Part shown: piece by piece, positions 6,109-64,000 of the stretch
Numbering within the stretch: the stretch's first letter is position 1
How the letters are laid out: every line of letters starts with the position of its first letter
NCBI RefSeq assembly: GCF_040938485.1
Contig: NW_027270890.1
Span: forward strand, 2,976,001-3,040,000
Reading direction: 5' to 3'
DNA: 64,000 nt
Origin: Diadema antillarum
Lineage: Eukaryota
Program-made: the position numbers and the translations under genes
The notes under the pieces: model-generated
Told to the model about the DNA's origin: nothing
Seen by the model: the letters and a program-made list of their open reading frames with translations, nothing else
The model's database searches: none

Positions 6109-7819
6109 CAAGTCATTTGCCCTGTGATAGAGTTTTGGGACAATTAAACATTAAGTAATACATATATGTATAATGGGAAAACTGCTTCAATATACAAAAT
6201 ACATGGCAAGAACAAGAGCAGCAACAAAAAGTCCTCATCTAATGTATTTCAGAGAATGACATTTGGTGAAAAAAAAAAGCTTCAGTGTCGATCATGAAGG
6301 ATTATTGGTATAGGTTGCATATCACTCGACATATTCTTTGCTTTTTGCGATGGTTTTATTTCATAAATTCAGAAGTTTACTGATATTCCCGAACTACTAA
6401 CATGCATAAAACTGAGAAAAGTGCTGTGATATTGTCTCCTAGGTGAAAAGAGACAAATCATCTTTGTCGTCTTTTGATCAGTGACAACACTTATATCTAC
6501 ACCCATTACTATATTTTTTCTCTCATGGAAGGAACCATTCCTAAACTTGTTTTTACAAGTCTTCATTCATAGGATATTATAGTTGTATGCTTGTGATTTC
6601 ACTACACACTCTTTCAAACAGAAAGAGTTTCTTTTTTTTCACTAAAACTATGAAATCTTTGAACTGCACCTGCGATACAACTGTCCAAGCACAAGTTGAA
6701 TTTCAAAGCAGGTTACTAATCTTTGGAATCAGTCCTTTCTTCTGTGCTTGCCATATTCATTAACATCCACCTGCTCCCCCCCCCCCCCCTAAAAAAAAGA
6801 AGAGGCTATTCCTTCCCAAAGTCTAAAACTGTATGACTGAATGCCCGTGGGGAGAACCTCAAACTTTCCTATTAATTTCCTCCGAGAGTAATAAAAATTA
6901 TTTCACAGAGGAGCGGTTGACTGTCCAGCTCTATGAAGGGAAATCAGGTACTTATCACAGGTTTCGTGCAGGGGTAATTGAATCTTTAATAAGCATTTTC
7001 ACAGGAACGTACTCATTTGGAAATAAATGAAATGGAGGAGAGACCTCCCAGAAGTACCTGTGTTGCTACAGCAATGCATTAAAGTAATTTCCTCTTATTT
7101 CCCTGTTGAGGTGAATGGCATTGAAAATCTCAAAGGGTTGCAACTATGGCTTTCTATTCATAACTGTGTATTTTTATTCTTGTTTAATGAAATAATGCGA
7201 TACCTGCAGACAGGTCTTTTGGATCACTACACTTTCTACCGATTTCATTAGACTTGGTACGGAGAATGAAGAAAAAATAATTTTCATGATCGATGAAAGT
7301 TTTAGACAAAAGATGAGGAAAGTTAGATTTATAGTCTACAGTATGTAAATGATACTTGGCATTTATTTTTTGCTGGAACACTGTTAGTTCATTTCTTCAC
7401 AGAAAGATACTTTCAGGTATGATATCTTGAAGGCACTCCAATAAATCATTCCCATGTGCAAACATTTCTATAAAATAAAGACAAATTACTCCAATTACCA
7501 CGTAATATAGTAAAATAATATATGCTAATATTCTTATGAACACTATTTGAAGTAACGGATGAATGCTCACTGATAAAAATGTACTCTGTAGGCTATGAGC
7601 ATGGTGTTTAGTTAAGCCAAAAATAACTGACTGGTGAAATGAAACAGCCATATGTAAGATGGCAAATTTTATGACCTTCCTCTCTATGTTTTGTGTTCTT
7701 TTACTTAACCCATCACCTTCTGCACCCTTCTGGGCCCTGTATAAAGTATATGGGGCTTTAAGAACCTCATAGTGTGCAGGTTAATGTCAATCTTTGGTGG
7801 ACAACTAATATCTACACAT

Positions 7820-30300: not shown

Positions 30301-33300
30301 CCAGGTGTATAAAAAATCACGAGCAAAGATGGAGGTAATGACAATAGTAGGGCACTTTGGAGAAGCATTGTGAACACTGATGAGGCTATCCTGGGCAAAT
30401 AAGACAGTGTCATTGTTATGATTTTTTATAATTGTTATGTATATATCCTTTTCCTTTTATCACATACAAACTCGATTTGCCAGCCGGACAAGACTATTCA
30501 GGGATTAAGTAATGACTAAGACTATGCTAGGGCTGAGTAATGTCTAAGACTACACTGGGACTAAGTAATGACAAAGACTAGGCTGGGACTAAGTAAAGAT
30601 TAGGATTATACTAAGACTAAACATTGACTGAGACTAGGTTGGAACTAAGTAATGACTAAGACCCATGCTAAGACTAAGTAATGCCGAAGACCAGGCTGGG
30701 ACAAGTAATGACTAAGACCCATGCTAGGACAAAAGAATATTGACTGCACTTACCTCGCCCAGCTGGGGCAATCTCTTGTCCCAGAGGCCCGGTCCACATG
30801 GGCCGTTCCAACAGGATGGGGCCTTGGACCTCACAGCGGATGTTGAATCCTTCTCCAGGTGATGGTCTCACATCCGAGCTGGGAGTGAAGACCACTTCAA
30901 AGTCATCTTCATCTGTGAGACATGATACGTTAGAGAGAAATCAGGTCAGGTGTTCTCTTATCAAGATAAAGAAATATTTCTATTAGCTTGTTTCAAGAAG
31001 TGTATTGCAAGTCCGGAGACTCTTATCTAGATAAAGAAATATTCTATTTGTTTGATTCAAGAAGCCTATTTCAAGATCAGAGACTCTTATCAAGATAAAG
31101 AAATATTTCTACTTGTTTCTTTCAAGAAGTCTATTTCAAGATACAAGACTCTTATCATGATAAAGAGAATTTCTATTTGTTTGTTTCAAGAAGCCTATTG
31201 CAAGAAATGAGACTCTTATCAAGATAAAGAAAAATCTATTTTTGTTTGCTTTAGAAGCCTATTGCAAGATCAGAGACTCTTATCTAAAGAAATTAATCAT
31301 TCTATTTGTTTAATTGTTTCAAGAAGTCTCTTGCAAGATCAGAGACTCTTATCTAGATAAAGAAATATTTCTATTCGTTCGTTTCAAGAATCCCCTTGCA
31401 GGATCGGAGAGGTTTGGCTGCTCTGAAATCATCACCATCATCTTCATTACCATAGCATGAGGGACTGCCTTCATCAGATTTCCTCAGCATCACTGATCAC
31501 TATGGCAACCACTGATCACAATACCGAGTATCATTAACACCTAGTGCACTGTATTTACTGATTGGCACGTCCACTGGAATGCTTTCTTTGCTGACTGGCA
31601 CAGATGTCTGGAAACTAATTTCATATCCTACAATCCCTCCCCTCCCCTGTGAGAGATTCTTACATGAGTATTGGCAGTGGGATCCGGTGTACTCTGGGGA
31701 GCACTGACACACCCCTTCCACACAGTCTCCTCCGTTCTGACAGGTGGGAAGGCATCTCGGAACTATGGTGGAAGTAAAAAGCACATAGTTAAAGAACAAG
31801 TCCGGTCAAAATGTGATGAGCAAACAAACACTAAAACTATTATTTTTTTCTTCTTTGTTCCATTTGCAGATTAAGTGTAACAGATTTTCTTTTCTTCAAG
31901 GAGATTCACACGACACAAGAATTGTCTTTAATGATATTTTTATCCTTTTGCAGGTTTATGTTAAGAATTATGCCTCTTACTACACATACACTGTGCAATT
32001 TGTGAATATTATGTTGCAATTTATAAAGAATTCAATTATTAAACATTTTACTGACAAAGGATTTACATAACATTCCTTCTAGTTTATGCTCTGTGAAGAT
32101 GGAATAATCTTAAATGTATTAAAACAGATAGGGGAATCAAATCTTTAGTTTTCTTGGTTTGAGTGATCTACTGCTCATATTACAAGAGGATCTCTTCTGC
32201 GAACAATCAAGTTGCTAATTTGCAAGCCATAGTCACATACACTTCTTTATTAAAATTATGTGACCAGTTAACCAACATACACCGCACCGGAATAAATTCA
32301 TACCTGTCATTTCAAATCCTTGTTTATTCATTGAATATCATGAATGGAACACAGTAGCAAAAGTATTCGTCAAGGAACAGACAAACCAGGACAAACACTG
32401 AACACCCAACACCGAACACCAAACACTCACTGTAGATGTTGAGAATGATAGTCTCCCTCTTTGGTTCAGCAGCACAGGTGTAGATTCCTGTGTCGTCCTC
32501 CGTGATATCTTGGATGACCAGTCTGGACTTGGTCAGCGAGACCCGCTGGACCAGCAGACCGGCTATGTTCACATCTACACCAGATACAACGGGGTAACAT
32601 AATGACACCGATTAATACACAAGAATACACAGAGACAGAACACTATACATGACATAATGACACCGATTAATACACAAGAATACACAGAGACAGAACACTA
32701 TACATAACATAATGACACCGATTAATACACAAGAATACACAGAGACAGAACACTATACATAACATAATGACACCGATTAATACACAAGAATACACAGAGA
32801 CAGAACACTATACATCACTGTTGATGCTCACTGCAAACTCATTTGTAATGGACACACAACAATTTGGCTCAAGATTTGATAGCCAAAACTTGCAAAAATA
32901 AACATGAACTTCATAAAACTGATTTATGATATTGTTTGCAAACCACCGCAAACAAACTTGTATCTTTTAGCAATAAACCATAACATCAATCTCAATATGA
33001 CCTGATGTGTACTTTCTGAATTATTCAAGATTAAAAGTGTGCCATTCTTTAAACACCTAGGGGTATTTAAGTTTGGACAGAAGATGGTTACCAAAGTGAG
33101 ATGCATATAAATGGCAATGTTAATTCACTGGTACAATATGCAAATAAGTGGCAAGCACTGAATATCAGGTATAGACGGGTATTCCAGAAACTGCAAACGT
33201 AGATCCTGAATAACAAGCATGGGTCACCGCAAATTATTGTTTAATTATATACCACCTCACAATCACAGAAATGTCAACAAATGCGACAATAAAACTTGCA

Positions 33301-36300
33301 AACCAAATGTTAATAAAGTATAAAAGTTGTACTCATCGCAACTTAAGTCATCAAAACCGTCATGATTAACACCACAAGAGAGTGTGAAGTAAATACTTAG
33401 ATGATATATGACTGGTTAAATATTAATGTTACGTTACAGTTACATAAGACAAAAATGTGTTTTGTAAGTGTTCTCCAGTTTCACATAAAGTACAGGTAAT
33501 TAGTTGACGTGGAATTCTGTTAATAACACCAACAAAATAATACTGAAAAAAAAAAAGAAACCCCACACAAATCCTTCACTAGTTTGAGACTTTTATGATG
33601 AACATTTAAACACTCATGCTTAACATGTGGGACCTAAATATTTCTTTGTTGACACTTAGGAAAGGATAAACACCTGGAAATTTATCCATGAAGTACAGAT
33701 TAGGATTGGCTTCAATTTGTAAATGGTTAACTATCAACTAATGTTCTGTAACCCAAGTAAATTAATGGTGTTTGATTTGATGTTGATTAAATATTGAAAC
33801 AAATACATATCTTTTGAGCTCAAACCTGATCTCAAATTTACCTTGCATCTCACGAAATTAATGAAAAAAAATTGTCGAGGTTGGATAGGCCCTACTGATT
33901 GATTATTGACAGATTAACGAATAAATTGAGCATGATTTCTATCTGGATTTTTATAGCATACCCCATAAAATATCTCAAGTTATGCAAAATTGTATCCTAA
34001 TTGAGTTCACATCAATATGTACATGACACTGTGAAACACGTGTCTCTGCTACTTTGTCTAAAAAAAAAATCCTTCCAATTAAATTCTCAATAGACTTCTA
34101 AGATTCAATAGAACAAATAACTGTAGACCTTAGGATCAACTCACTGAATTGACAATATCTGCATGCTCATGCATAATTGTACATATGTGACCCTGCACCT
34201 CAAAACAAACAAAAAGTCGCCAGACATGAATTTCTAGTTAAGGCCATATTCTGGAAGAGCAGACTTTGAGCTTTAAAATGATGTATAACTCAAATCAAAT
34301 GGACTCTCCTAACCTATCTAAATATTGGAAAGAAAGCACAAACTCAGGAAAAGTGTGAACTGAGAAAAGAGGCTCTGAAGTACAGTGTCTATTCAAGCGC
34401 TCAATCTTTACCAAACCGTGCTGGCTGTGCGATGAATGGGACAAAAAACAGGAAGTTAACCACCAGAGTAACAACAATAAAGGGATTATCAGATTAAACT
34501 GAAATTAAGCATGCCTCATTAACACATTCTGTCCATAATTAATGCCAACTTTCAAAGCAATAGCACTATCTTGTCAAAAGTTATCAGAGTTGAAAGTGAA
34601 GAGTGAGGACAAGGTTTTTCAGAAATGAAAAAGGGATTCTAAAGACACGCCTAATCACACTATTCTACCAAAAATGTTTGAGATAAACTGCTAAAAAAAA
34701 CACACTTTCCTGCCCGATTTATGATACCAAATTTTAGCATAATGTAAAAGAAGACCCGTTCTTTCAGAAAATATGAAAAGTCAAGTTCGGCTAGGTTGAC
34801 CCATTTCACTTATTTTCAGTCCTCATGCGAAATCAGTGTGTGCGACTTTATGTTCGTTTTGAGGTGCACGGTCACATATCGTACATGCAATATCTGAAAG
34901 CTTTTGATTATTTTCTGGATAATAATTCCGAATCGGCTTTTGTATGTTCACTCACACAAAAGAACAACAATTGTTTATTGAAGCTATTTGGAGTCATCTA
35001 AAATAAAATTATAAGAATTCTTAAAATTAAGCATACATGCAAATCATGTACAAGTGTATATTAAGAAGCTCAAAGCAACAAAAAGTGCATGTGCAGTGGA
35101 AGTAGATATATACCCTATTAATGCGGACAATAATATCACTCTGGTCAATCAAAAAAAAAAAAGGTTTTGTGAATTCTGAACCTGACATGGAAAAATCAGC
35201 CTGCCTCTTGCTATGAATCAAACGAGTCTGTCTTTCAAAGTAAAATTGACTTCAACACACTATTAGTACACACAACCTTTGAGAAAAAGAAGATACAGCC
35301 TTATGTAGAGAAATACTGGTTGGAAGTTTATCTCAAAGGTATATCTTTCAACTGCTTTTCTAAAAAAATTATCCATGTTGAAGTGCACAAGAATCATTGA
35401 ATTATTCTGAGGGCTTTATGGGGTCTTAAGAATGTGACAAACAATTGCCTTTAAAAATAAACATGTATGAGATCCAATGACTGATAAAGTGTCAATGACA
35501 ATCACAACTTTTGTGAAACCTTGCCAGTTTTGATATGAAATTCCAGCTCGGGTAGAGTTTATTTCCAAAGTTTAAAGATATTTCACAAGAAATTTTGCAG
35601 CACAAGCATGGTGTGCAACACAGAACCAGCAAGATCCTATTCAACATTGCGATGTGATTTCAAACATGCACCCTTTGGCAATGCAAGCCTCTTACACAAG
35701 TCCTTAAATATAACATAGAAATTAATTAAAAAAATCCAAGGAAATGCACACATTACTTTGGATGGAATTAAAGAACTTTGCACAAGTATATGTATCTCAG
35801 AGGTACATATACATCTACTTGTGCGACATGTAGAATTTCACAGAATATGCCAAAAGAAATGAAGTAAAAGTACATACACTGCTGGAGGGGCAAAACAGCA
35901 TGCTCTTTATAGTGTGCAAGAAAGTTATTTCTATCCATACATGTATATGTACAAATAATATGTGCCATAATTATATCAATTTAATACCACATTGTCAAAA
36001 TTAACACACAAACACGTAAACACAATAATATAAACCCTGTATGCACATGAACCTGACAAGGATGTCTGTAACAGTCAGTAGTCAACAGCATTAATAGCTT
36101 CGCATCACATGCCACAATATGTTAACAGAAATAAAAACTGAACTATTAGCTGGGATTAAGAAACAAAACACAACAAATATATACAAACAAACAAATACGA
36201 AATGGACGAACACCATCTCAACCTGGGGGGTGTTTCATAAAGCTGTTCGTAAAGTTACGAACAACTTACGAGCGACTGGTGATCAGTTCTTGTGCTGAAT

Positions 36301-39300
36301 TATGGAAATTCTGATAAGTATAGCACAACAGAACTGATCACCAGTCGCTCGTAAGTCGTTCGTAACTTTACGAACAGCTTTATGAAACAGGGCCCGGGAA
36401 TATTGCAAAGCGCATTTTCAATGCAAGCTTGTGCACAAGTATGAAATATACATTGGAAAGAAAATGTACCAGTTACACATGTTAAATAATTTCACTTGAC
36501 TCTGTTGCAAAGAACAATTGTTCTTGTTACCTGAGAATGAGAATTCTTCCACAAAGGGGTCTTCTACAGGATTGTATGATGGAAGGAGAAATAAGATGGA
36601 GCAGAGAGATGGTAAAAACATCATGAAAAAGGCATGGGTGGGACTAAGGAAATCTGGACTACAAAATGGCAGGAGAACATGAAAGGTTTGCACATGTAAT
36701 GAGCTTCACTGTCTACATGTCATCTTTGATAATCATGAATATGCATGAAGCAGTTTGATGAATAATTTCTGATATGCCAATGTTAGCCTTATATCTGCAT
36801 TTTACATTTGCAATGGAAAATCTATCTAAATGATATGCAATTGTACAAAGAGTAATTTAGCAATTTGATTGAAGGCTAAACTGATTCAAAACAAAATACT
36901 AAATGACATACAGACTGTCAAATTTATCTTTCAGGGTCTTGGTTGTATGAAATGTATGTTTGAAGTTATTTTACAATCACACACACACTGCTCATAGAGC
37001 ATTTCATATTATCAAGTGTAAAACTAAAATCTGTGTGATTGTATAGTATTGTCTCTAAAAATGAGTAAGATCCACAAATACACCTTGATACCTAACTGAG
37101 CATCTTTAAAAAATTGGAAACAGCAGACATGAAGATGGCACAATATGGTAATACAGTGGCACTTTACGAGGCATTGGGTTTGAAAGATCAAACTTTCATT
37201 CACCAGTGAAAAGCAATAGGGCTAAAGACTGATGTACATTTAGTAGCTGGGGTGACAAGACCTCGTATCTGAAATTTTGGTGAAAGTGACTTTTTTGGAT
37301 TAATGGTCAGATAATCAGTTAAGTGATGTCCTGTCCAAATCCTAGCTGTAATACCCCCAAAATGAAGCCACCACAGCACGTCAAAGGAAAGGCTATCCCA
37401 CTTGATATAGTGCTTTGGCTGCCATGTTTTTGTGCTCTCCTGAACATTTGACATTTTGTAGATACGAGGTCTTGTCGCCCCAGCGACGATTTGTAATTAC
37501 CTGAGGAGCTAAATGAATTCGCCAGCTCTGAGTCTATGATAATGGATTGATGATGCGCAGGGATCAGATCAAGGGTCACACATGGTGGGTCAAAGGTCAA
37601 TGTAGAAGGTCAAAGGGGGAAGTGAAGGGAGTAGTATGGAGCCAAATGATGAACAGAAGTTTGCCAAAAAAAATCATAGATATAAAAACAGAGTAAAGAA
37701 ATAAAAGTGCATTTAAAAGGGTAAGATACACGATATATGTGAAAATAAATCAATAGAAGGTAAAAGGGTAAAAACATAATAAAATTAATGATAGAAAACA
37801 ATATTAACTTTAACTGAAGAAAACTCATGCATCATACCGTGAGCAGTACGGTATGGGAGTGTGCTTTTTGTTAAGCCTTTGTTTTCTCATGATCTTTGGA
37901 ACTTGTCTGCCAAAACTTTACAAACCAAACTTTCATGAACATCAAAGTGAGAGATGCGAGTTTCTTCACTTTGTCTCCCTCTACAAATTAAATTTGTTAA
38001 GATCGCAACTGCTGATCTGTAAATCATCTTTTTTTCTTTCTTTCAACATCAAAGTGTTTGCAAAATTCTTATTTTAGAGAAAACAGCAGCTTCTGCACAC
38101 AAGATAAGACACAAAGAGTAAAATAATAACCAAGAAATTATAGACAATGTAATATGCAAACAGTAGCTTGTGTCTGAGGGATGTTGGCTTTGTCAATGAT
38201 GTTCAAATCTTTCTTCTTTTTATTGATACAAAAACCTGCTTAAATATCAAAATATTCTACAGGAAAAAAGCCATTGGCTTTGCTGCACTTTCAAAACATG
38301 CATGTCAACTGCAAGGATAACAATATTGATATTAAAGGACGGACAGAAAATTGGCAATCACAAGGTTTAGGGACATTGTCCTTTGACTCAGGACGCTTTT
38401 TTGGTTTGTCATTTGATTGGTATGTATGACAATTTCTAGGGACACTTTTGGAGTTTAAAAGTTGTTTAAAAATTTTTCAGTTGACAGCAAAATTTAATCC
38501 AAAATAATCTGAACATTGCATGCCAACAGTCATCCCAAGCACACCGAATGATAAATAGATATTATGCAAAACAAATTGGAAAGGAAACAAAAAGGAAATA
38601 AAAGAATACATATACATATGAAACAGAAAAGAATAATGGCAAAATGATTAGAAATAAGAATGCTTTCATTTATTTTGAGGGTGGCTACAGGTGTGTAAAT
38701 GCTTTCTGGAAGGGAGACTGATAGCTCATGAATACTGCCCAGTTTGGAAGATGAATACGTGGGCAGAAATTGGGAAAAGCTGCAGGGTTTAATTTCAGGG
38801 TAGAACAGCATTTTATGATGATGCACTTTGCTGAGTTTCTCATTTGCTTGGGATGTTCACTTCTTGTTTGCAGGAAATCTCGAGAAACAAGAACATAGTA
38901 CTGATTGCAATTTGTGAGAAATTGATTATCTACATGTCAGCTAAAGAGGTACCCTGTACATTCCTCTTTGTGCAGTAACACAAAAAGAAGAACCACTTTT
39001 CCTCTTTGGGAAAGGTAAAAAAAAGTGTTTAGCCCATAAGGAAAGCTGATGTAATTCAAAAATTTGACCAGAGACACTACTGCAAAAGGAAGAAAGTTAG
39101 CAAAATCATAGAAATACACGCAGAAGGGAAACTGAATGGTTTCTACTGGCTACATCACAGCAAGGAAATAATAATACAAAAAGTGAATATGTGCATGGAT
39201 TGAGCAAAAGAGTGTGGCTTGGGTGTGAAAACAATGGATATCTTGAATTTTTTGGAAGGATCTTTAATAGTCAAAGATGGTAGGCCTACTGTGGAGAAAT

Positions 39301-42300
39301 GGAAAACATTGTGATTGTAAAATGATTTCAGATAGTTATAAGTCACATATCTTCAATCAAATTCAGACAAAAAGGAAATAAGATGGAATGAATGCTGGGT
39401 TGGAATGTTTTCACCACTCACCAGCTCGACTGGGGGAGATGACCCGCCCGTTGGGGTCGTACCAGACTGGAGTCGGTGCCTCTGGGCCGGTGCTCTCACA
39501 TAGGAAACTCACGCTGTCACCAACAGAGGGCGTCAGCTCTTGGTCAGGTGTGATGGTGACGTTGTATGGGATGAACTCTGAAGAAAATCATGAGAAAATC
39601 AAATGCATTTCAGCTTTCCAAAAAGTTGCATGTTAACCCATTGAGGACGGGTCCCTAGTAAACTCAAGCAAGTGTTTATGGGAAATGTGTGTTGTAGCAA
39701 AATCAGCCCGTCCTCAACGGGTTAACAAGCAAATGTTAAAGCCTTGAATAATCATCAAGAAATCTACAACAATCAAATGAAAGATTCTTGCATCGAGTTG
39801 TTTTTACTGTGTCTGATTGACAAATTACTCTTCAAACAGATGCAATAAATTCTGCATCAATCACATTATAAAATATTTAGCATGACAAGACCACATACTG
39901 TTTATGGTCCCGTGTGTTTCACTTTATTGGTATGATCAGTATTAATGAAACAAATTGCCACTTGTTAGTAATTCCATATATTCACATTGCTAACTTCACT
40001 CAAGGAGAAACATACTTCGTTATATCATGAACTCCACCTCAACATTCTGACAAGAAACTTTAATGTGAATTCACATTAACAATGGGTTACTAGAGATATC
40101 AATTGTGGTGCTTGCTTCTATCTTTAGTGAATAATAGTCCGGCTATCAAATCAATTCCACCCATAACTCTTTATGTGCCATGGTGGAAACCCCCTGTGTG
40201 CCACGTTATTCTGAGACACGAAGGTAGTCATGCTTTGAGAAAGAATTCTGTTTTTCCAATTTGTATAACTTCTACAAATTTCTGTTAAGCTGGACATAAT
40301 AATGAGCAAAGTTAGAGGAATGCCAAACTTTGCTTCCATATACAATGTATAACTATTCTATTTCCAATTTTTCTTTTGATTTACCAGTTGCTATATTACT
40401 ATAAAGGCATGACATTTGCACATAGAAGAGTGACAGAAATTTAGAATGTACACGCATATCTAGTTGGGAACACCGCTTGATAGTCAATCACCACATAGAA
40501 TGCAAGCCGTATGTGAGAGGAACAAAAGCGCGAGAAACGCTTTGATTGTACCGCGGGATTAGCGATTTATCGATCGGTTATGGCGGCTTTGTTTGCTGAG
40601 CAGAATATGCGAAGTTGGCACGCCGTCGACTGAGCCGGACGTGCAAAGAGATAAGAGTGGTGACTGTTTCATAGCTGTGATAAAAAAATAAATTCTAATC
40701 TACAACAGAATACACCAATAAAACTAGACTTGGGTATATAAACCCCTACTAATGTCTTCTTTTCCCCACACTGGTAAGGTTACAGAATGAAGGATGAACA
40801 GAAATTCATGTCTCACCTTCTACTTCACAGAAATCTCCCTGGAAGCCCTTTGTGCACACACACTGGCTGCGGACACAGTTACCGCCATTTTGACAAGGCT
40901 GTGCACAAGTTGGTGCTGTAGACATGGAAAGTGAGTTTATCAAGTTTGTATGGTTAATGAAAAGCAAATATTCAAATGTACACGTAACTACACAATATCC
41001 TGAAGAATAGAATAATCTGAAATGTGTGTCTGCACTGCACAATGCCAATTGAGATTTGGCATAATCTCTTTTGAATGAATAAATGAAGAGTTTGTTCGCA
41101 AAAACCGATAAGTCCATATTCGGCAAATGGAGATATTTGCGATCAAAGGTCAAGAAAAATAAGGAGAACAATAAGAAAAATTTTGCTTATTTTGACCATA
41201 ACTTCAAAAATGTATCTTTATATGTAGTGACCAATATATCATCTAAAAGGTATTATTTTGTACTTTTTGACAGAGACAGCACTTCAAAATCTTTAAAAAT
41301 GGACTTATCGGTTTTTGCAAACAAACTCTTCAAATATTGAACAGTAAGCTGCTCAACACATTACGTCCCTTCTGCTTGAAAATTACAAACACAACAAGCC
41401 TTTTGGAAGAAACATCTGTATTGTTAACTGTTATTTTTCATGGTTATACAAACAACAGGAAACACAACATACTCTTTTAATTTTTTGGACAAAGATATTG
41501 AGCTAAATGTCATTACCTACATGACCACATTTCAAGTTCATTCAAAAAGAACAAGTTTTATGTCCATCATTGCAACAATATTGCAGGGAATTATGGAATC
41601 ACTTCAAGAAAGACTATCTTTCACAATTTAAAATTCTTCAGTCAATCTACACTTATAAACAATTCTTATGATGATGAGTTTGATAAGTTTGAATATGCCA
41701 AGAAATTTTGGAAATCTTCTTCTACACACTGTACAATGGGGGAAGCTCTACAATTCAAGTCTTACCATTTACTACCTTGTGTCAATCACAATGGTTCAGC
41801 ACAAATGTCATTCATTGGTGATGAATATCAACAACAAAACAAGACTGAATTTGCAAGTGACCACCATTTAGAAAGTGACCAAACATCCATTGTCCAAGAC
41901 TTACGTGGGATGTTGAGTGTGTAGAGACTGGTCAGTGGGCCAGCCGTGCAGGCCAGGTCTCCGGCCAGATCTTGGCTCACACTGTCAATGACCAGCCGGG
42001 TGACCAGGGGTGAGACACTGACAGCATGTACTGGGGGTGGGGACGGATCTGAAGGGGAGGGAGAGGAGATAAGTTGAGATGAAATCATGGCAGTGCATAG
42101 ATCAAGAATCACGGATACTAACCACAGTATCTTCTTTTTGAAATGATTCTGTTGGTAAAATGAGCTAGCATAACATATCCTATAAGCTAAACTGAGTCAT
42201 ACATGCATACAGAATTTTTTAAATTCTAGCATTCCAAAGTTTTGCAAGTATATTTTGGAACAAAAAAGCTCTTAAACTACAAACTTGTTGAAGATGGAAG

Positions 42301-60300: not shown

Positions 60301-63298
60301 CTGGACAGGCCCAACCATACAGGTGAACATTCCAGAGTTATATGGCTGGACATTGAACATGACCAGTTCGGTGGTCAGCAGGGAGGGGCGTCTGGTGCCC
60401 ACTGCTTCATCCAAGGTTCCTATGGAGATAGAGAGGATGAGGTTTCAAACAGACAACAAGAGATAAATAATAGACAGATACCTTCTGGTACAAACGAAGG
60501 AAAGACCTGGGCACCATGTCATGAAAGTTGTCAGCCCCGACAAGTTGTCTGTCTCTGACAATCACCATATTAACAGTCAGTGACCAAAGCTTCTCAGCCA
60601 ATCAAAACCAAGGATTTTCCTGAAATTTTCAGAGACTGACAACTTGTCAGGGCTGACAACTTTCATGAAACAGTGCCCTCATCAACAGAAAGTGAGAGAT
60701 AACTATATAATAGACAGAAATGTTCTCATACATACAGTGGAAAGAACTGGTGAACAGAGATTGTGAGAAACCTTAGACAGAAATGTTCTTGTACAAAGAT
60801 GTATGTATACAAAAAAACAAAACAAAACATTGCACAGAAATAGAGAGACAAATAATAGACAGAAATTTACTCACACATAAGTGTACAGCAAGAAAACTTT
60901 TAAAAGAGAGAAAAGGATATATAATAGACAGACATTTACTCTTAAGACATTCAGGAAAGACATATCAGCAGATACTCAGAGAGAAAAAAAAAATCAAATG
61001 ATTATATAACATAACCATTTTGCACACATCATGTGGTGTACATAACTGACAAGATACTTTCCTTTGTTTTCCATAAAACATATCACAAAATTGTGGCAAA
61101 ATTATGATCAAAGGGAAAAACAATATAATGACAAGTGACTTTCATACCCAGTGAGACTCTATTCCCAGTATTATCCATCCAGACTGGGATCCCGTATGTT
61201 TCATCACTGGCATTGCAGGTCAAGTGAAGGTCATCGCCGGCCATTAGGATGACGCTGTCCGGACCACCGATGGTCAGACTGACCGCTAGAGGAGAGAACA
61301 CACAGGGATTAAAGGAAAATGGTTTGAGGTTCCCATTTCTTTGAATGCATGATGTTTTTTATGAATATTTCCTTTGTGTTATGTTAGATTTTATTTCTAC
61401 ATGCACATACAGATAGTCCGAGGGGGCGGGGATTTCGTTGCATATCTTGCATTTTTTTATGTCTACCATATAAACCTTAATATACAAGAACTACTGTATA
61501 AACAGCAGCAGCTGTTATTTCGCGTACAGATATTTTCGCAAATGGGGAGGTCATGGACTTTTTTGTGAGACTCTGTTTTAGCGATTTGATTCTGAGCCTT
61601 ATCGTAAAGAGCATGCACTATTAGTCCAGCATATGGCGACATTTTCGCATGTTGTTAAATTTGTGGTCCAACAGTGATTCACGAAATTTGCAAAAATAAC
61701 ATCTTATACAGTACATACACTTGAAGAGTTTGTTCGCAAAAACCGATAAGTCCATATTTGCCAAATGGAGATATTTGCGATTAAAGGTCAAGAAAAACAA
61801 AGAGAATAATAAGAAAATTTTAGCTTCCTGTGACCATACAGTGTAACTTAAAAAATGTACCTTTATATGAAGTGACCAATATATGTGACAGTGCACCTCA
61901 AAACGAACATAAAGTCGCACGCACTGATTTTGCGTGAGGACTGAAAATAAGTGAAATGGGTCAACCTAGCCGAACTTGACTTTTTCATATTTTCTGAAAG
62001 AGCGGGTCTTCTTTTACATTATACTAAAATTTGGTATCATAAAACGGGCAGGAAAGTATTTTTTTTTAGCAGTTTATCTCAACTTTTTTGGTAGAATAGT
62101 GTGATTAGATGTGCCTTTAGAATCCCCTTTTCATTTCTGAAAAACCTTGTCCACACTCTTCACTTTCAACTCTAATAACTTTTGGAAGGATAGTGCTACT
62201 GCTTTGAGAGTTGGCATTAATTATGGACAGAATGTGTTAATGAGGCACGCTTAATTTCAGTTTAATCTGATAATCCCTTCATTGTTGTTACCCTGGTTGT
62301 TTACTTCCTGTTTTTTGTCCCATTCATCGCACAGCCAGCACGGTTTTGTAAAGATTAAGCGCTTGAATAGACACTGTACTTCAGAGCCTCTTTTCTCAGT
62401 TCACACTTTTCCTGAGTTTGTGCTTTCTTTCCAATATTTAGATAGGTTAGGAGAGTCCATTTGACTTGAGTTATACATCATTTTAAAGCTTAAAGTCTGC
62501 TCTTTTAGAATATGGTCTTAACCCAAAATTCATGTCTGGCGACTTTTTGTTTGTTTTGAGGTGCAGGGTCACATATCATTTAAAAGGTATTATTTTGTGC
62601 TTTATGACAGAGACCGTATTTCAAAATCTTCAAAAATGGACTTATCGGTTTTTGCAAACAAACTCTTCACTTGACACACCAAGTCTTGAAGGAATTTAGC
62701 TGTGAAAATTGTTGTCTCATCATCATCTAAATGGCAACCCTCCATTGCACTGCTACAGGTATCTCATGTTGAAAAAGATTACATGGAACTTGATAAATAC
62801 ATCAGGGCCCTCTTTTATGAAGAGTTAAAATTGATTATAAAGTTGATTTCAACTGTAAGTCTATGGCAGCCTTTGTGGCAAGGAAATTTAAAATCAATTT
62901 TATCTTTTGATACAACGGGGCCCTTACAAAATAATACCAATCTGATACACAATATTAATCTAGATTTTTTGTAATGCATTGCCAATTTAAGGATCAATAC
63001 TGAATTGACCCATTTAGGGCCTTTTTGATAATTCTTCAACAAAAGAAAGTGTGTAATTCATATGAAAGAGGAGTTCTTATGCTATATCCTTAAGAAATAC
63101 TATCACTGATTGGTAAAAATGACAATAAACAGATTAAACATAACGAGAATATGGGATGCGATTGGTTAACCTTTGACCTTTGATCCTTACCAGGAATTTG
63201 GCAGATATCTCCACTGAATCCCTCTGGACAGGTGCAGACTCCAAGCACACACTGACCTCCATTCATACACTCTGGTTCACACTGCAGTGGTAGCGCTT
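10766..63298 (-). CDS. Span of a large multi-exon EGF/Ig repeat protein gene (43 exons seen; 17 EGF-like + 14 Ig); 5' and 3' ends not identified
   Basis: 43 GT-AG-bounded exons, all phase 1-1 and multiples of 3, join into 1940 stop-free codons. All EGFs have 6 Cys. All 14 Ig have B-strand Cys, C-strand Trp and F-strand Cys. Confidence 0.92.
11043..11518. mobile_element. TTAA-flanked non-autonomous DNA transposon (AGG termini, Kolobok-like by inference)
   Basis: TTAA|AGGCAGCCGATCGT..ACGATTGAGTGCCT|TTAA; GC-rich island within an AT-rich intron. Confidence 0.6.
11817..11902. repeat. (AAG)n microsatellite, ~28 units
   Basis: Uninterrupted trinucleotide run. Confidence 0.97.
12080..12338. mobile_element. 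GTGAC-terminal MITE, 259 bp
   Basis: ~40-bp TIR GTGACCCGCTACAACAAAAGGATCCTAAAGTCGCTGAC; flanks AAAT/AAAC. Confidence 0.85.
12414..12650 (-). CDS. Fused exon EGF17 + Ig14 N-half
   Basis: 237 nt, phase 1-1 (acceptor less certain): CFPMCINGGICMEGECRCPAGYTGSHCEGVLPVSINIVPSHDSEPRIGGTISYLCSVNDTNLVEPPIWRNAAGENISY. Confidence 0.86.
12769..12983. mobile_element. MITE with CAGAGCTGCCAAC TIRs and 6-bp TSD
   Basis: CATTCT|CAGAGCTGCCAAC..GTTGGCAGCTCTG|CATTCT; internal repeated GAAAATCAGTA motifs. Confidence 0.8.
13545..13993 (+). mobile_element. 5'-truncated L2/Crack-like LINE 3' end
   Basis: ORF2 C-terminus ILLLVYQCFHKIAPSYFSELL..RVLRSS..YGKRSFRHAAPELWNSIP..FLKTYLF; 3' UTR AAGCGC..GCGCTATATAAGA; (TAA)n tail; antisense to the host gene. 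Confidence 0.85.
14026..14124 (-). CDS. Exon EGF16
   Basis: 99 nt, phase 1-1: RSCEPPCANGGTCNNGVCECVDGFIGGHCELR. Confidence 0.93.
14631..14843. mobile_element. TACTGT-terminal MITE
   Basis: Collinear with 19409-19614 (same orientation). Confidence 0.75.
14914..15054 (-). CDS. Exon Ig13 C-half
   Basis: 141 nt, phase 1-1, not in ORF track: RDDRIYTQRLTSHETKLIIHNFTSEDIGVYRCNGGPLTTTFTIVLA. Confidence 0.91.
15316..15677. mobile_element. Fold-back element: 158-bp inverted arms (2 mismatches) around a 46-bp spacer, carrying a tRNA-like sequence
   Basis: Arms 15316-15473 and 15520-15677 are reverse complements. Confidence 0.9.
15509..15579 (+). other. tRNA-derived Pol III promoter-like head (not a canonical tRNA)
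   Basis: A-box TGGTCTAGTGG, B-box GGTTCGAATCC, intact T-arm GTAGG-TTCGAAT-CCTGC, partial acceptor stem; non-canonical anticodon arm. Confidence 0.65.
15907..16065 (-). CDS. Exon Ig13 N-half
   Basis: 159 nt, phase 1-1: GIRSSIVIIPSIEKSPMVGEDIEFLCRTSGPNAPRYPFWRNPSGRIISSNPA. Confidence 0.91.
16089..16472. mobile_element. TTAA-flanked fold-back MITE (AGGG termini, Kolobok-like by inference)
   Basis: TTAA|AGGG..CCCT|TTAA with long imperfect internal palindrome; lies ~20 nt upstream of the Ig13-N acceptor. Confidence 0.75.
17060..17158 (-). CDS. Exon EGF15
   Basis: 99 nt, phase 1-1: RPCPLNCANGGTCEDGVCLCPTGYQGSFCQIG. Confidence 0.93.
17614..17861. mobile_element. ~248-bp GAAGAG MITE (subfamily 2)
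   Basis: ATTT|GAAGAGTTT..AAACTCTTC|ATTT, perfect 4-bp TSD; inverted relative to 4992 and 7820. Confidence 0.85.
18030..18167 (-). CDS. Exon Ig12 C-half
   Basis: 138 nt, phase 1-1: EDRVFTFDVNATATRLYIRPLAEGDTGLYTCATGPLNSTVFITIE. Confidence 0.92.
18980..19141. mobile_element. PIF/Harbinger-like MITE
   Basis: ~40-bp TIR GGCACTGTTTCATGAAAGTTGTCAGCCCTGACAAGTTGT; flanks CTG/CAG; second copy 60510-60677. Confidence 0.85.
19164..19322 (-). CDS. Exon Ig12 N-half
   Basis: 159 nt, phase 1-1: IQPMSISILPEEGQVFYTGENIAFLCLTQGTFAPQNPKWREPSGRIVGNRQT. Confidence 0.92.
19409..19614. mobile_element. TACTGT-terminal MITE
   Basis: TACTGTAA..TTACAGTA; homolog of 14631-14843. Confidence 0.75.
19944..20042 (-). 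CDS. Exon EGF14
   Basis: 99 nt, phase 1-1: PSCIPECENGGECVGGECRCPTGFNGSACELQ. Confidence 0.93.
21346..21447 (-). CDS. Exon EGF13
   Basis: 102 nt, phase 1-1, not in ORF track: AYSCIPRCVNGGQCIEGICVCSEGFLGEACDRI. Confidence 0.92.
21820..21966 (-). CDS. Exon Ig11 C-half
   Basis: 147 nt, phase 1-1: ESNHIFTTRKSGFTTELQITNVSFADSGTYACNAGPLQQSISVTIHNT. Confidence 0.92.
22544..22702 (-). CDS. Exon Ig11 N-half
   Basis: 159 nt, phase 1-1: SIDANLRIELDPDNEYTEGGNVTFRCITSGPDAPMNPRWRKGDFQYINSAVF. Confidence 0.91.
22727..22921. other. Assembly gap (195 N)
   Basis: Run of N starting 24 nt upstream of the Ig11-N acceptor. Confidence 0.99.
23487..23591 (-). CDS. Exon EGF12
   Basis: 105 nt, phase 1-1: PGCHSQRPCYNGGTCMGGRCFCQVDFTGDLCQFT. 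Confidence 0.93.
24261..24302. repeat. (CT)n microsatellite
   Basis: Directly visible. Confidence 0.95.
24806..25574. mobile_element. TACTGTATACGC-type MITE interrupted near its end by a second MITE
   Basis: Outer parts collinear with the uninterrupted inverted copy at 56435-56660. Confidence 0.8.
25032..25558. mobile_element. Nested 527-bp TACTGTAAACGT-terminal MITE
   Basis: TACTGTAAACGT..ACGTTTACAGTA inside the 24806 element at a TA-rich site. Confidence 0.8.
26461..26599. repeat. Imperfect palindrome (~62-bp arms) with GAC-GAA-GTC apex; core of a probable larger repeat element
   Basis: GGAACAT-ACCAAATGTTCCACCC..GTCCC / GGGAC..GGGTGGAACGTTTGGTACATGTTCC. Confidence 0.8.
27281..27379 (-). 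CDS. Exon EGF11
   Basis: 99 nt, phase 1-1: SRCTPPCLNGGVCRGGQCECPETHMGRDCSQQ. Confidence 0.92.
28560..28574 (-). CDS. Candidate 15-nt linker microexon between Ig10 and EGF11
   Basis: gtctctgtgtgtgttactcttctaaag|GC CAA GAT TCT GAA G|gtaata; phase 1-1, (G)QDSE. Confidence 0.4.
29348..29485 (-). CDS. Exon Ig10 C-half
   Basis: 138 nt, phase 1-1: GSDSVHVEFEMQNSTRLHLDSITPNQAGIYICNAGPVAAVYNVSL. Confidence 0.92.
29545..29704. mobile_element. TACTGT-terminal MITE
   Basis: TACTGTAAAAC..GTTTTGCAGTA; partial relative at ~44096-44210. Confidence 0.7.
29888..30050. mobile_element. Small DNA element with GGCGGATCCAG TIRs (hAT-like by inference)
   Basis: CAAGGGCGGATCCAG..CTGGATCCGCCACTG; no clear TSD. Confidence 0.6.
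30490..30728. repeat. Degenerate ~28-29-bp minisatellite, ~8 units
   Basis: Unit GGGACTAAGTAATGACTAAGACTA(T/G)GCT. Confidence 0.85.
30754..30912 (-). CDS. Exon Ig10 N-half
   Basis: 159 nt, phase 1-1: EDDFEVVFTPSSDVRPSPGEGFNIRCEVQGPILLERPMWTGPLGQEIAPAGR. Confidence 0.92.
30953..31408. repeat. ~64-bp minisatellite, ~7 units
   Basis: GACTCTTATC recurs at 31018, 31082, 31147, 31211, 31275 and 31344. Confidence 0.9.
31664..31762 (-). CDS. Exon EGF10
   Basis: 99 nt, phase 1-1: PRCLPTCQNGGDCVEGVCQCSPEYTGSHCQYS. Confidence 0.93.
32431..32574 (-). CDS. Exon Ig9 C-half
   Basis: 144 nt, phase 1-1: VNIAGLLVQRVSLTKSRLVIQDITEDDTGIYTCAAEPKRETIILNIY. Confidence 0.9.
32596..32815. repeat. 55-bp tandem repeat, 4 near-identical units
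   Basis: AACATAATGACACCGATTAATACACAAGAATACACAGAGACAGAACACTATACAT x4. Confidence 0.95.
34187..34875. mobile_element. 689-bp GTGAC-terminal non-autonomous DNA transposon
   Basis: ATAT|GTGACCCTGCACCTCAAAAC..GTTTTGAGGTGCACGGTCAC|ATAT; closely similar inverted copy at 61885-62572. Confidence 0.9.
36226..36394. mobile_element. PIF/Harbinger-like hairpin MITE
   Basis: ~65-bp near-perfect arms TGTTTCATAAAGCTGTTCGTAAAGTTACGAAC..; flanks CTG/CGG. Confidence 0.85.
36531..36563 (-). CDS. Candidate 33-nt microexon inside Ig9
   Basis: Pyrimidine tract + tgtag|AA GAC CCC TTT GTG GAA GAA TTC TCA TTC TCA G|gtaaca; phase 1-1, (E)DPFVEEFSFS. Confidence 0.6.
37237..37493. mobile_element. TA-flanked MITE abutting the donor of microexon 37501-37533
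   Basis: Inverted GCTGGGG(T/C)GACAAGACCTCGTATCT cores near each end; TA at 37235-36 and 37494-95. Confidence 0.7.
37501..37533 (-). CDS. Candidate 33-nt microexon inside Ig9
   Basis: catag|AC TCA GAG CTG GCG AAT TCA TTT AGC TCC TCA G|gtaatt; phase 1-1, (D)SELANSFSSS; 272-nt AG-free zone upstream. Confidence 0.5.
39422..39577 (-). CDS. Exon Ig9 N-half
   Basis: 156 nt, phase 1-1: FIPYNVTITPDQELTPSVGDSVSFLCESTGPEAPTPVWYDPNGRVISPSRA. Confidence 0.92.
39633..39725. mobile_element. ~90-bp piggyBac-like mini-element
   Basis: TTAA|CCCATTGAGGA..TCCTCAACGGG|TTAA; relatives at 43099-43191, 46528-46620, 52490-52653, 54607-54696 and degenerate ones at ~13320 and ~23195-23375. Confidence 0.8.
40817..40915 (-). 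CDS. Exon EGF9
   Basis: 99 nt, phase 1-1: [32 protein letters not shown]. Confidence 0.93.
41085..41331. mobile_element. ~248-bp GAAGAG MITE (subfamily 1)
   Basis: AAAT|GAAGAGTTTGTTCGCAAAAACCGATAAGTCCAT..ATGGACTTATCGGTTTTTGCAAACAAACTCTTC|AAAT. Confidence 0.9.
41905..42048 (-). CDS. Exon Ig8 C-half
   Basis: 144 nt, phase 1-1: PSPPPVHAVSVSPLVTRLVIDSVSQDLAGDLACTAGPLTSLYTLNIP. Confidence 0.9.
42468..42632. mobile_element. PIF/Harbinger-like MITE with 3-bp CAG TSD
   Basis: CAG|GGATCCATTTCAT..ATGAAATGGGGCC|CAG; the empty site is preserved in the adjacent duplicated segment. Confidence 0.85.
42674..42943 (-). CDS. Fused exon EGF8 + Ig8 N-half (no intron between them)
   Basis: 270 nt, phase 1-1: GECENPCTNGGTCDNGACLCPLGFAGRTCEVPVGPDGILVNITITSSLDHDPQIGEGVSFLCELSPNPLYTNPQWHGPTGQVVPVVDAL. 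Confidence 0.9.
   Translation of the reverse strand: MENVRTPALMEEPVITEPAFVRLALPAALARCPSVRTVSWSTSPSRRRLTTTRRLGRGSVSCVSSVPTRCTPTHNGTAPLDRSYPSSML
43099..43191. mobile_element. ~90-bp piggyBac-like mini-element
   Basis: TTAACCC..GGGTTAA; homolog of 39633. Confidence 0.78.
43781..43918 (-). CDS. Exon Ig7 C-half
   Basis: 138 nt, phase 1-1: GTRHLNTRVTRRTNRLTISKLTVEDAGQYTCQVGPIISSFDIIPR. Confidence 0.92.
45022..45180 (-). CDS. Exon Ig7 N-half
   Basis: 159 nt, phase 1-1: TENYQLRIRVQRNPEFLLDEVTKILCEIRGNNNQENPVWRGPNGQVIRPAGR. Confidence 0.9.
45685..45783 (-). CDS. Exon EGF7
   Basis: 99 nt, phase 1-1: QECTVPCANGGTCVEGTCQCVGDFVGGFCQNI. Confidence 0.92.
46330..46467 (-). CDS. Exon Ig6 C-half
   Basis: 138 nt, phase 1-1: GQRIFSDVQSNTETALTITSAESGDAGRYSCVVGMNRADYLLSVS. 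Confidence 0.91.
46528..46620. mobile_element. ~90-bp piggyBac-like mini-element
   Basis: TTAACCCATTGAGGA..GGGTTAA. Confidence 0.78.
47327..47479 (-). CDS. Exon Ig6 N-half
   Basis: 153 nt, phase 1-1: RRPFSIEIQGPPRETPEIGDDLTLICRVSRSGEGIPTWLGPDNQPIAGIQ. Confidence 0.9.
48259..49412. mobile_element. 1154-bp non-autonomous piggyBac-like element
   Basis: TTAA|CTCTTAATGTGCCA..TGGCACGTTAAGAG|TTAA; subterminal GGCGACCATGGCACGT repeats; no transposase frame recognised. Confidence 0.8.
49582..49680 (-). CDS. Exon EGF6
   Basis: 99 nt, phase 1-1: [32 protein letters not shown]. Confidence 0.93.
50429..50569 (-). CDS. Exon Ig5 C-half
   Basis: 141 nt, phase 1-1: GTSHFTSEVIDRKATRLVINDLQVMDSGPYVCNVGPVTTQFDIQVQ. 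Confidence 0.92.
51123..51263 (-). CDS. Exon Ig5 N-half
   Basis: 141 nt, phase 1-1: FVVSINQTLPSLPRTGDSVSFICEVDPSSPYDNPIWYDPYGVPVSQ. Confidence 0.92.
51371..51655 (-). mobile_element. tRNA-derived SINE with a Deu/Nin-like central domain (by recollection of the motif)
   Basis: A-box TAGCACAATCGG, B-box GGTTCAATTC, central GTCCCTAGGATAGGACATTAACTGGAGGTCC; 3' end approximate. Confidence 0.75.
52135..52233 (-). CDS. Exon EGF5
   Basis: 99 nt, phase 1-1: IPCERPCFYGGRCVNGACECQEGFVGEQCETP. Confidence 0.92.
52490..52653. mobile_element. Two nested/overlapping copies of the ~90-bp piggyBac-like mini-element
   Basis: TTAACCCATTGAGGATG followed by a second TTAACCAGTTGAGGATG..CCTCAATGGGTTA and an outer GGGTTAA. 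Confidence 0.7.
52704..52844 (-). CDS. Exon Ig4 C-half
   Basis: 141 nt, phase 1-1, not in ORF track: GNSHVHMEPLTPYATRLFINDLRLTDAGMYVCKVGPVEKRFTVLAE. Confidence 0.92.
53351..53503 (-). CDS. Exon Ig4 N-half
   Basis: 153 nt, phase 1-1: NSFILVTEPEGQVPIVGQNQSFVCEVSRENPYGIPVWLDREGAIIESLNE. Confidence 0.92.
54158..54232. repeat. (CTACGT/CTACTT)n hexamer microsatellite
   Basis: Directly visible. Confidence 0.93.
54357..54452 (-). CDS. Exon EGF4
   Basis: 96 nt, phase 1-1: PACYPPCINGVCTDGRCECPVGLTGIQCNMP. Confidence 0.93.
54769..55018. mobile_element. ~248-bp GAAGAG MITE (subfamily 1), inverted relative to 41085 and 61723
   Basis: ACTT|GAAGAG..CTCTTC|ACTT. Confidence 0.9.
55259..55524 (-). mobile_element. 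tRNA-derived SINE
   Basis: A-box TGGCTCAGTGAG, B-box GGGTTCAAACCC, body GTCATACCAAAAGACGTTAAAA, (ATT)n tail. Confidence 0.82.
55586..55726 (-). CDS. Exon Ig3 C-half
   Basis: 141 nt, phase 1-1: RRSSPFTEDITPFATQLHFVDAHFHDTGTYTCRVGPFSKLFNITFA. Confidence 0.92.
56435..56660. mobile_element. TACTGT-terminal MITE
   Basis: TACTGTAAACGCCA..TGGCGTATACAGTA; ~11 nt from the Ig3-N donor; homolog of 24806. Confidence 0.85.
56672..56824 (-). CDS. Exon Ig3 N-half
   Basis: 153 nt, phase 1-1: SDFIVIGEPIGQVPEVMGNATFLCEVPESSSYGSPRWLDPAGQEISAVNL. Confidence 0.92.
   Translation of the reverse strand, partial: RQISLSSESRLDKSLKSWVMPPSCVRSQRAAPMGHPAGWTLLDRRSQLSI
57248..57346 (-). CDS. Exon EGF3
   Basis: 99 nt, phase 1-1: LECTPACENGGTCIEGECLCNEGYTGETCSEQ. 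Confidence 0.93.
57803..57931 (-). CDS. Exon Ig2 C-half
   Basis: 129 nt, phase 1-1: MYVDVVNDMSSELVITDLQSDDLGIYYCTGGPDVEYINVEFA. Confidence 0.92.
58604..58759 (-). CDS. Exon Ig2 N-half
   Basis: 156 nt, phase 1-1: DGYVSISTDLGQLPNPGTTVRYRCNVKQGDHFVQRPQWFRNGQLIDPAQQG. Confidence 0.9.
58798..59044. mobile_element. ~248-bp GAAGAG MITE (subfamily 2, degenerate ends)
   Basis: Collinear with 17614-17861. Confidence 0.75.
59575..59673 (-). CDS. Exon EGF2
   Basis: 99 nt, phase 1-1: PDCVPVCRNNGTCVNGECQCTADWVGSECKVP. Confidence 0.92.
60270..60419 (-). CDS. Exon Ig1 C-half
   Basis: 150 nt, phase 1-1: TLDEAVGTRRPSLLTTELVMFNVQPYNSGMFTCMVGPVQTTVMVLVAGE. Confidence 0.9.
60510..60677. mobile_element. PIF/Harbinger-like MITE
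   Basis: Same TIR as 18980-19141. Confidence 0.83.
61148..61285 (-). CDS. Exon Ig1 N-half
   Basis: 138 nt, phase 1-1: VSLTIGGPDSVILMAGDDLHLTCNASDETYGIPVWMDNTGNRVSL. Confidence 0.92.
61492..61713. mobile_element. TACTGT-terminal MITE
   Basis: TACTGTATAA..TTATACAGTA. Confidence 0.65.
61723..62668. mobile_element. GAAGAG MITE (subfamily 1) split by a nested 688-bp element
   Basis: ACTT TSD; the two halves rejoin to match 41085-41331. Confidence 0.9.
61885..62572. mobile_element. 688-bp GTGAC-terminal element nested in the GAAGAG MITE
   Basis: ATAT|GTGACAGTGCACCTCAAAAC..GTTTTGAGGTGCAGGGTCAC|ATAT; the empty site in the 41085 copy has a single ATAT. Confidence 0.9.
63191..63298 (-). CDS. Exon EGF1
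   Basis: 108 nt, AG/GT, phase 1-1: ALPLQCEPECMNGGQCVLGVCTCPEGFSGDICQIP. Confidence 0.93.
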
Positions 63299-63395: not shown

Positions 63396-64000
63396 GTAAC
63401 CGTGCATCACAAAACGAACAAAAAGTCGCACCCCTTAATTTTACATGTCGATTCAAAAAAGGTGAAATGGGTCAACCGAGTCAATTTTGGGTTTTTCATT
63501 TATTCTGAAAGAGCTATTCTTCTTCTACATTATACCCGACTTGGGGATCATAAAATGAATGGGAAAGTGTGTTTTGAGCAATTTTTCTACAACCTCTTTT
63601 TTGTACAGTAGTGAAATCATGTATGTCTTCGAGGCCCCTTAATCTCTGGAAAATCTTTTGCACATTATTCACTTTCAACTTTAATAACTTTTGAAAGGAT
63701 GGTGCTACTGCTTTGAAAGTTGGCATTGATTATGGACAGAATGTGTTGATAAGCTCAATTTCAGTTCAATCTGATAATCCCTTCATTGTTTCTACTCCGA
63801 TGGTTTACATTCTGTTTTTTGTCCCATTCATCGCACAACCAGCACGGCTTGGTGAAGATTAAAGCACTTGAATAGACACTGTACTTCAGAGACTCTTTTC
63901 TCAGTTCACACTTTTCCAGAGTGTGTGCTTTCTTTTCAGTACTTAGATTGGTTAGGGAAGTCCATTTGAATTGAGTTATATATCATTTTAAAGCTTAGAG
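63396..64000. mobile_element. Diverged relative of the 688-bp GTGAC element, running off the window
   Basis: ATAT|GTAACCGTGCATCACAAAACGAAC..; interior collinear with 61885-62572. Confidence 0.8.

Follow-up and report, generated by a model that had tools for sequence, protein, structure and literature searches.

Does the long intron that cuts one immunoglobulin (Ig) domain of a giant EGF/Ig repeat gene of the sea urchin Diadema antillarum hide small optional exons that could remodel this domain? The gene runs on the minus strand through the whole stretch of DNA analysed here (64,000 nt, contig C2, 2.976-3.040 Mb; hereafter the window), and a first-pass annotation had pointed out two 33-nt in-frame segments in that intron, which we call ME1 and ME2. 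Judging from the sequence evidence, we put the probability that at least one of them is a genuine cassette microexon at about 0.5, and reasonable ways of combining the numbers spanned 0.15 to 0.85; that both are real cassette exons is doubtful. Four modest, largely independent signals make a reading by pure chance uncomfortable, i.e., the splice-site grade of ME2, the intact peptides of both segments in two copies of the locus with only synonymous changes in ME1, the similarity of the two peptides, and the YCAY tracts upstream of both. The split domain is laid out as follows, with a slash marking a splice junction here and below:

39422..39577, minus strand: Ig N-half exon of the split domain (strands A to C'), phase 1-1, 156 nt, donor CTG/gtgagt
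32575..39421, minus strand: mid-Ig intron, 6,847 nt, longest in the window
37501..37533, minus strand: ME1, candidate 33-nt cassette exon, DSELANSFSSS, acceptor score -1.7, donor score 5.4
36531..36563, minus strand: ME2, candidate 33-nt cassette exon, EDPFVEEFSFS, acceptor score 5.1, donor score 8.3
32431..32574, minus strand: Ig C-half exon of the split domain (strands D to G), phase 1-1, 144 nt

The repeating unit of the array consists of three exons, one for the EGF domain (usually 99 nt) and one for each half of the Ig domain (138-159 nt for the N-half and 129-147 nt for the C-half), and every array exon is of phase 1-1. In the window, 41 exon boundaries were set by reading frame, AG/GT dinucleotides and domain content. 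In Pfam, EGF_2/EGF match the EGF exons, and positions 5-44 and 54-77 of the I-set profile correspond to the N-half and C-half exons, respectively. The whole array extends from about C2:3.146 Mb to 2.948 Mb, i.e., ~200 kb, and comprises roughly 35 Ig units, counted as IgC-type exons. The label Ig9 given earlier to the split domain is thus valid as a numbering inside the window and says little about its place in an array that is far larger. The N-half exon (39577-39422) ends with ...AGTCGAGCTG/gtgagt in phase 1, covers positions 5-44 of Pfam Ig_3/I-set and scores 74.5 bits with a hidden Markov model (HMM) of the gene's own IgN exons; the C-half exon (32574-32431) starts with gtgtag/ATGTGAAC, covers I-set positions 54-77 and scores 66.1 bits with the IgC exon HMM. 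Skipping of everything between them gives the product ...SPSRA-D-VNIAG.... The other mid-Ig introns measure 506-1,510 nt and the second-longest intron overall 3,695 nt (27280-23586), so the exon table bears out the earlier statement that the 6,847-nt intron is by far the longest here. Both candidates are placed exactly between the halves of one split Ig domain, a position like that of the VASE exon of NCAM, as had been proposed.

ME1 with its boundaries reads tcatag/ACTCAGAGCTGGCGAATTCATTTAGCTCCTCAG/gtaatt and ME2 cctgtag/AAGACCCCTTTGTGGAAGAATTCTCATTCTCAG/gtaaca. The sequence confirms that both are bounded by AG and GT, 33 nt long, of phase 1-1, free of stop codons and encode the peptides listed above. 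The internal GAATTC and the CTCAG/GTAA end that had been noticed in both are present as well; this sharing is not significant and carries no evidential weight. A length of 33 nt fits the broad definition of microexons (up to ~51 nt) and exceeds the strict one (3-27 nt). ME1 has a second acceptor at 37527 (score 1.7) that would yield a 27-nt form, and ME2 includes the purine-rich motif GGAAGAA. Neither is a recursive-splice exon, since the segments begin with AC and AA and no GT 5' splice site is regenerated after ...GCTG.

Splice sites were scored with weight matrices trained on the 41 real exons of the window, for which leave-one-out scoring gave means of 7.4 (acceptors) and 8.0 (donors). The null consisted of 400 kb, i.e., twenty random 10-kb loci of the same genome searched on both strands for phase-symmetric open segments of 9-99 nt. 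ME2 falls within the range of the real exons, and its summed score beats that of 13 of the 41. Segments matching it at both sites occurred three times in the null (0.0075 per kb), which corresponds to 0.05 expected in this intron and 0.34 in the 45 kb of introns of the gene; in these 45 kb of sense introns, ME2 is the sole candidate with both site scores this high. By summed score alone, the expectation for ME2-grade segments rises to 0.9 in the intron and 6 in the gene, and the pseudo-exon 14832-14794 equals ME2 by this measure only. Judged by splice signals alone, ME2 is moderately unusual, whereas ME1 does not stand out.

The locus is present three times in the 1.75-Gb assembly. Besides C2, contig C21 (430001-440000) holds a 99.99% duplicate of window positions 31592-41592 with one gap in 10 kb, and C1031 holds a collinear diverged copy, 85-94% identical, which is either the other haplotype or a recent duplicate. 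The genome of D. setosum is 886 Mb at chromosome level (PMC11066563). The present assembly is about twice that size and therefore probably contains uncollapsed haplotypes and some redundant contigs, and copy counts in it should be read with this likely redundancy in mind. Compared with C1031, the real exons are 96.4% identical and their changed codons divide into 41 synonymous and 4 non-synonymous, which shows purifying selection on the gene; the N-half exon of the split domain is 100% identical. Both ME1 and ME2 retain AG, GT and frame in C1031, and their peptides are unchanged. ME1 differs by two third-position, synonymous changes, GCG>GCA and TTT>TTC, and ME2 is identical at 33 of 33 positions in a neighbourhood that is itself 96-99% identical. 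The acceptors score higher in C1031 than in C2, with ME1 reaching 0.8, the low edge of the real exons, and ME2 reaching 8.1 next to a donor of 8.3.

The background for such a pattern was taken from the same pair of copies. Intron pseudo-frames compared between C2 and C1031 were 18% synonymous, and 6.4% of the 673 intron windows with exactly two differences were all-synonymous. Both splice sites and the peptide were retained in 7% of the control pseudo-exons of 27-39 nt (n=128), or 19% of the gap-free ones; a single one of the 128 kept sites and peptide while bearing a synonymous change, and none of the 35 controls with at least two changed codons was all-synonymous. The pseudo-exons of ME1 grade at 43558-43490, 37054-36989 and 35755-35696, the last two in this very intron, lost AG or GT in C1031, and another at 33709-33674 shows two non-synonymous changes there. 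The codon pattern, together with the peptide similarity and the YCAY tracts, lends indirect support to the view that ME1 and ME2 may be maintained as coding sequence.

The two peptides share the pattern acidic, x, x, hydrophobic, A/V, x, x, F, S, x, S. Aligned in register, they score +13 by BLOSUM62, where the null has a mean of -9.9 (P = 0.004 with all 33-nt pseudo-exons and 0.015 with CAG-ending controls), and 3 of ~516 comparisons within the window reach +13. One Ser common to both is written with the unrelated codons AGC and TCA, and the flanks of ME1 and ME2, compared for signs of an origin by duplication, align no better than shuffled sequence. Directly upstream of each acceptor lies a tract of similar composition:

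37534..37593, minus strand: CA/pyrimidine-rich tract, 60 nt upstream of ME1, 5 YCAY (6 in C1031), includes CATCATCAATCC
36564..36623, minus strand: polypyrimidine/YCAY-rich tract, 60 nt upstream of ME2, 4 YCAY (6 in C1031), includes CATCATACAATCC

The null mean is 1.0 YCAY per 60 nt, and at least four were found in 2.6% and at least five in 0.3% of the null pseudo-exon acceptors, compared with at least four upstream of 4 of the 41 real exons. ME1 and ME2 thus each have a YCAY cluster within ~200 nt of a splice site, as Nova-type regulated exons do. In the Nova RNA map, upstream YCAY clusters favour skipping.

The place of a possible insert in the Ig fold was obtained by aligning the half-exons to an intact homologous domain (P0002:489-591), which was folded with a 51-domain family alignment at a predicted local distance difference test (pLDDT) score of 92.6. 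The exon junction corresponds to residues 53-55 of this domain, in loop 52-59, flanked by the C' bridges (residues 48 and 51) and by strand D (60-66). By homology to this model and by the Pfam I-set coordinates, an insert of 11 or 22 residues would fall into the C'-D loop, in agreement with the C-D region suggested earlier, and in the model such an insert is structurally plausible. Two Diadema domains have 7-8 extra residues at this loop.

If at least one candidate is genuine, the gene would allow an optional, frame-preserving inclusion in a giant secreted or surface EGF/Ig repeat protein of a sea urchin. Exon 39577-39422 would be spliced to ME1 and/or ME2 and then to 32574. The C'-D loop, which is exposed to solvent, would thereby grow by 11 or 22 residues, acidic and rich in Ser and Phe, and the beta-sandwich would stay undisturbed. 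The likeness of the peptides could come from an old duplication of one microexon or from a shared constraint, and the YCAY/CA-rich tracts upstream of both acceptors could place them under common control by a Nova- or hnRNP L-type RNA-binding protein. We infer from this layout that the segments may be spliced in, that their inclusion may be regulated and that it may alter binding; the neural expression and the switch of specificity that the first-pass annotation also envisaged would be purely speculative further steps. It is unlikely that ME1 and ME2 form a diverged paralogous microexon pair with shared YCAY/CA-rich control, which, used singly, together or in a mutually exclusive way, would provide up to four alternative C'-D loops.

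The exceptional length of the intron had been taken as a cue to concealed exons. Compared with C1031, the intron shows 91.6% substitution identity (62% to 100% in bins of 100 nt), and 1,457 nt of it are inserted in C2 only. As these ~1.46 kb are recent insertion without a counterpart in C1031, hidden exons are not needed to account for the length. The insertions include:

37232..37488, minus strand: miniature inverted-repeat transposable element (MITE) with terminal inverted repeats, ~257 bp, begins 12 nt past the ME1 donor, not in C1031
36231..36389, no strand assigned: fold-back MITE, near-perfect 160-nt hairpin, ~140 nt past the ME2 donor, not in C1031
34183..34879, no strand assigned: high-copy element of ~700 bp with ~38-nt terminal inverted repeats, not in C1031

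The strongest competing explanation, with a considerable probability somewhat short of even, is that ME1 and ME2 are ordinary intronic pseudo-exons ignored by the spliceosome, the other signals being coincidental or a consequence of low local divergence. Several observations weigh against genuine microexons and agree with this explanation. The introns of the gene contain 2,002 phase-compatible (phase-1) open AG..GT segments of 9-99 nt, ME1-grade segments occur at 0.79 per kb in the null so that 5.4 are expected in this intron, the acceptor of ME1 (-1.7) is under those of all 41 real exons, and ME2-grade segments judged by summed score are expected at the rates given above. The conservation of the 33-mers above intron background that the first-pass annotation had named as a check is not seen between C2 and C1031, which amounts to half of the refutation set out there: the nucleotide identity of both segments is no higher than that of the adjoining intron bins (local 94-99%), which equals many other bins; 38% of the intron bins reach at least 96%. 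Allowing for the divergence of the blocks in which they lie, the joint probability of both remaining intact by chance is ~0.04. The flanks of ME1 and ME2 are not homologous, and young, polymorphic MITEs adjoin both donors, 12 nt past that of ME1 and ~140 nt past that of ME2, which argues against tight constraint on the flanking introns; well-studied regulated microexons usually have conserved flanks. The spacing from the conserved Trp to DxGxYxC is 36-41 residues in ~50 Ig domains of the family, with no credible extra 11; the single outlier, at +21, looks like an annotation artefact. A gene of this kind also gives a low prior expectation of cassette microexons. Neither the protein library nor word searches with the IgC9 and IgN9 open reading frames (ORFs) yielded a transcript-derived fragment, and no transcript or annotation support was found; a search for RNA sequencing runs with the IgN9 exon listed none, which does not imply that there are none. 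Moreover, the YCAY and peptide-similarity tests were picked after the sequences had been inspected. The pseudo-exon explanation nevertheless has to accommodate ME2 sites of real-exon grade when both are required (0.05 expected in the intron), changes in ME1 that are synonymous only (null 0.02-0.06), peptides alike in register (0.004-0.015), shared YCAY tracts kept or strengthened in C1031 (0.03), and the decay of comparable neighbouring pseudo-exons between C2 and C1031.

The strong splice sites of ME2, the factor-binding-like YCAY/CA-rich tracts directly upstream of both segments and an intron exceptionally long for the gene would also suit segments that are recognised by the splicing machinery without productive coding, be it as decoy or intron-definition elements aiding the removal of the 6.8-kb intron or through overlap with conserved intronic regulatory elements. 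We regard this as very unlikely, since no 5' splice site is regenerated on joining to the upstream exon (the segments start with AC and AA) and both the synonymous-only change of ME1 and the in-register peptide similarity would stay unexplained. An origin of the segments as exonised pieces of transposable elements might be suspected from at least three young insertions in the intron, one of them 12 nt past the ME1 donor. It is effectively refuted by the copy number, as the ME1 and ME2 regions, flanks included, each occur as a single copy in the 1.75-Gb assembly and match only at C2, its duplicate C21 and C1031. The donor GTAATTACAAAT is older than the MITE, because C1031 has the donor without the MITE.

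The possible genuine cassette microexon can be likened to several known systems. NCAM VASE is a 30-bp exon between exons 7 and 8, within Ig4, and adds ~10 loop residues (PMC2116347, PMC2120034). ME1 and ME2 resemble it as small frame-preserving exons in an Ig-splitting intron and in the same kind of fold position, after C/C' and before D/E. They differ in that inclusion and developmental regulation of VASE were demonstrated experimentally, whereas ME1 and ME2 are candidates from genome sequence, in that there are two candidate exons instead of one, and in that the host is an alternating EGF/Ig array of ~35 units and not an NCAM orthologue; the likeness is one of layout. In the LAR-RPTP family (PTPdelta, PTPsigma, LAR), meA and meB, very short alternative exons located within Ig domains or between them, change the shape of the ectodomain surface and select binding partners (PMC12075705, PMC12598525, PMC6078854). 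Such partner selection is the mechanism that the first-pass annotation had proposed for ME1 and ME2; however, meA and meB are shorter, conserved in vertebrates and known from solved complexes, whereas inclusion of ME1 and ME2 is putative. The Z exons of agrin, small cassette exons under Nova regulation, have clusters of YCAY close to their splice sites (PMC12445529), and ME1 and ME2, with 4-6 YCAY in the upstream 60 nt, resemble them in a motif that was noticed post hoc. The weak acceptor of ME1 and its ~5 expected counterparts per intron are what it has in common with intronic pseudo-exons; in contrast to ME1 and ME2, typical ones lost a site or changed their peptide between the copies.

Loop-switching mini-exons as a kind are already known from VASE and meA/meB, and what would be new here, if real, is the host and the lineage. 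In that case, remodelling of an Ig loop by a mini-exon in a domain-splitting intron would also operate in an echinoderm, in a giant EGF/Ig array with all exons of phase 1, and the locus would lend itself to the study of young, possibly duplicated microexons that come with a candidate regulatory motif. A paralogous pair, if true, would be a lineage-specific, non-chordate counterpart of the VASE/meA loop switch outside the classical neural cell-adhesion molecules. If the segments are not real, the locus is a useful caution, since long introns abound in good-looking in-frame AG..GT segments (~0.8 per kb at ME1 grade). Either way, the part of the array in the window appears to be without a protein model.

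The RefSeq model P0003 (1,494 aa, 'uncharacterized protein [Diadema antillarum]') matches the 5' part of the array alone (3.099-3.147 Mb) and appears to stop on an Ig N-half exon, and the gene model here looks truncated or absent, despite the strong purifying selection on the exons. A query of a representative protein library with the IgN9 exon gave 75 matches, none of which contains any of the 41 exon peptides of the window or either microexon peptide. The best per-domain match is P0009 (69% identity), a genomic ORF in the assembly of a distant urchin (ENA ERZ26222911). The contig that carries it, L024, stops after 340 nt of the intron, and its introns cannot be aligned with those of the gene in the window. 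The closest relatives of the host gene are echinoderm EGF/Ig array proteins, and the nearest named one, a sea-urchin model, bears the label 'neurogenic locus notch homolog protein 2'. In one Ig domain of a homologous protein of the crinoid Antedon mediterranea (P0001, XP_071959435.1), positions 6156-6215 contain a ~20-residue hydrophobic insertion (LYTFTFLIFIHLFGSVYT) at about the half-exon junction point. It is probably an intronic segment wrongly taken in by the gene predictor, which suggests that in-frame pseudo-exons at the half-exon junction can enter annotations.

Exon HMMs detected no relic Ig or EGF exons inside the 6,847-nt intron. For the 257-bp MITE, whose terminal inverted repeats read gtcgctggggcgacaagacctcgtatc..., a first look at the genome gave more than 5,000 candidates of 89-94% identity. 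The fold-back MITE belongs to a very young family, for which the first look gave more than 1,200 candidates of 96-99% identity; the hairpin has a folding energy of -123 kcal/mol (z -25.9) and, if transcribed within the intron, could feed small-RNA pathways. An identity as mir-7 was rejected, since 34.8 bits against a gathering score of 51.8 in Rfam amounts to a generic hairpin match, and a MIR8562 match in Rfam is likewise sub-threshold and of the same appearance. Apart from these sub-threshold Rfam hairpin matches, no tRNA or known RNA genes were found in the intron. For the ~700-bp element, apparently a non-autonomous DNA transposon that was active recently, the first look gave more than 8,000 candidates of 95-98% identity; related copies lie near 61881-62576 and 63764-63982. 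A 75-nt piece at 37952-38026 is 100% identical at more than 35 further places of the genome and corresponds to no tRNA by ARAGORN and no family in Rfam. About four tandem copies of a 55-bp unit occupy 32595-32815, just upstream of the IgC9 acceptor, and their number differs in C1031.

Elsewhere in the window, EGF11 passes directly to EGF12 over the 3.7-kb intron (27281-23585) with no Ig exons in between, and the exon HMMs detected no relic Ig halves in this intron. Apparently, EGF11/EGF12 represents either a unit built without an Ig domain or one from which the Ig domain was lost.

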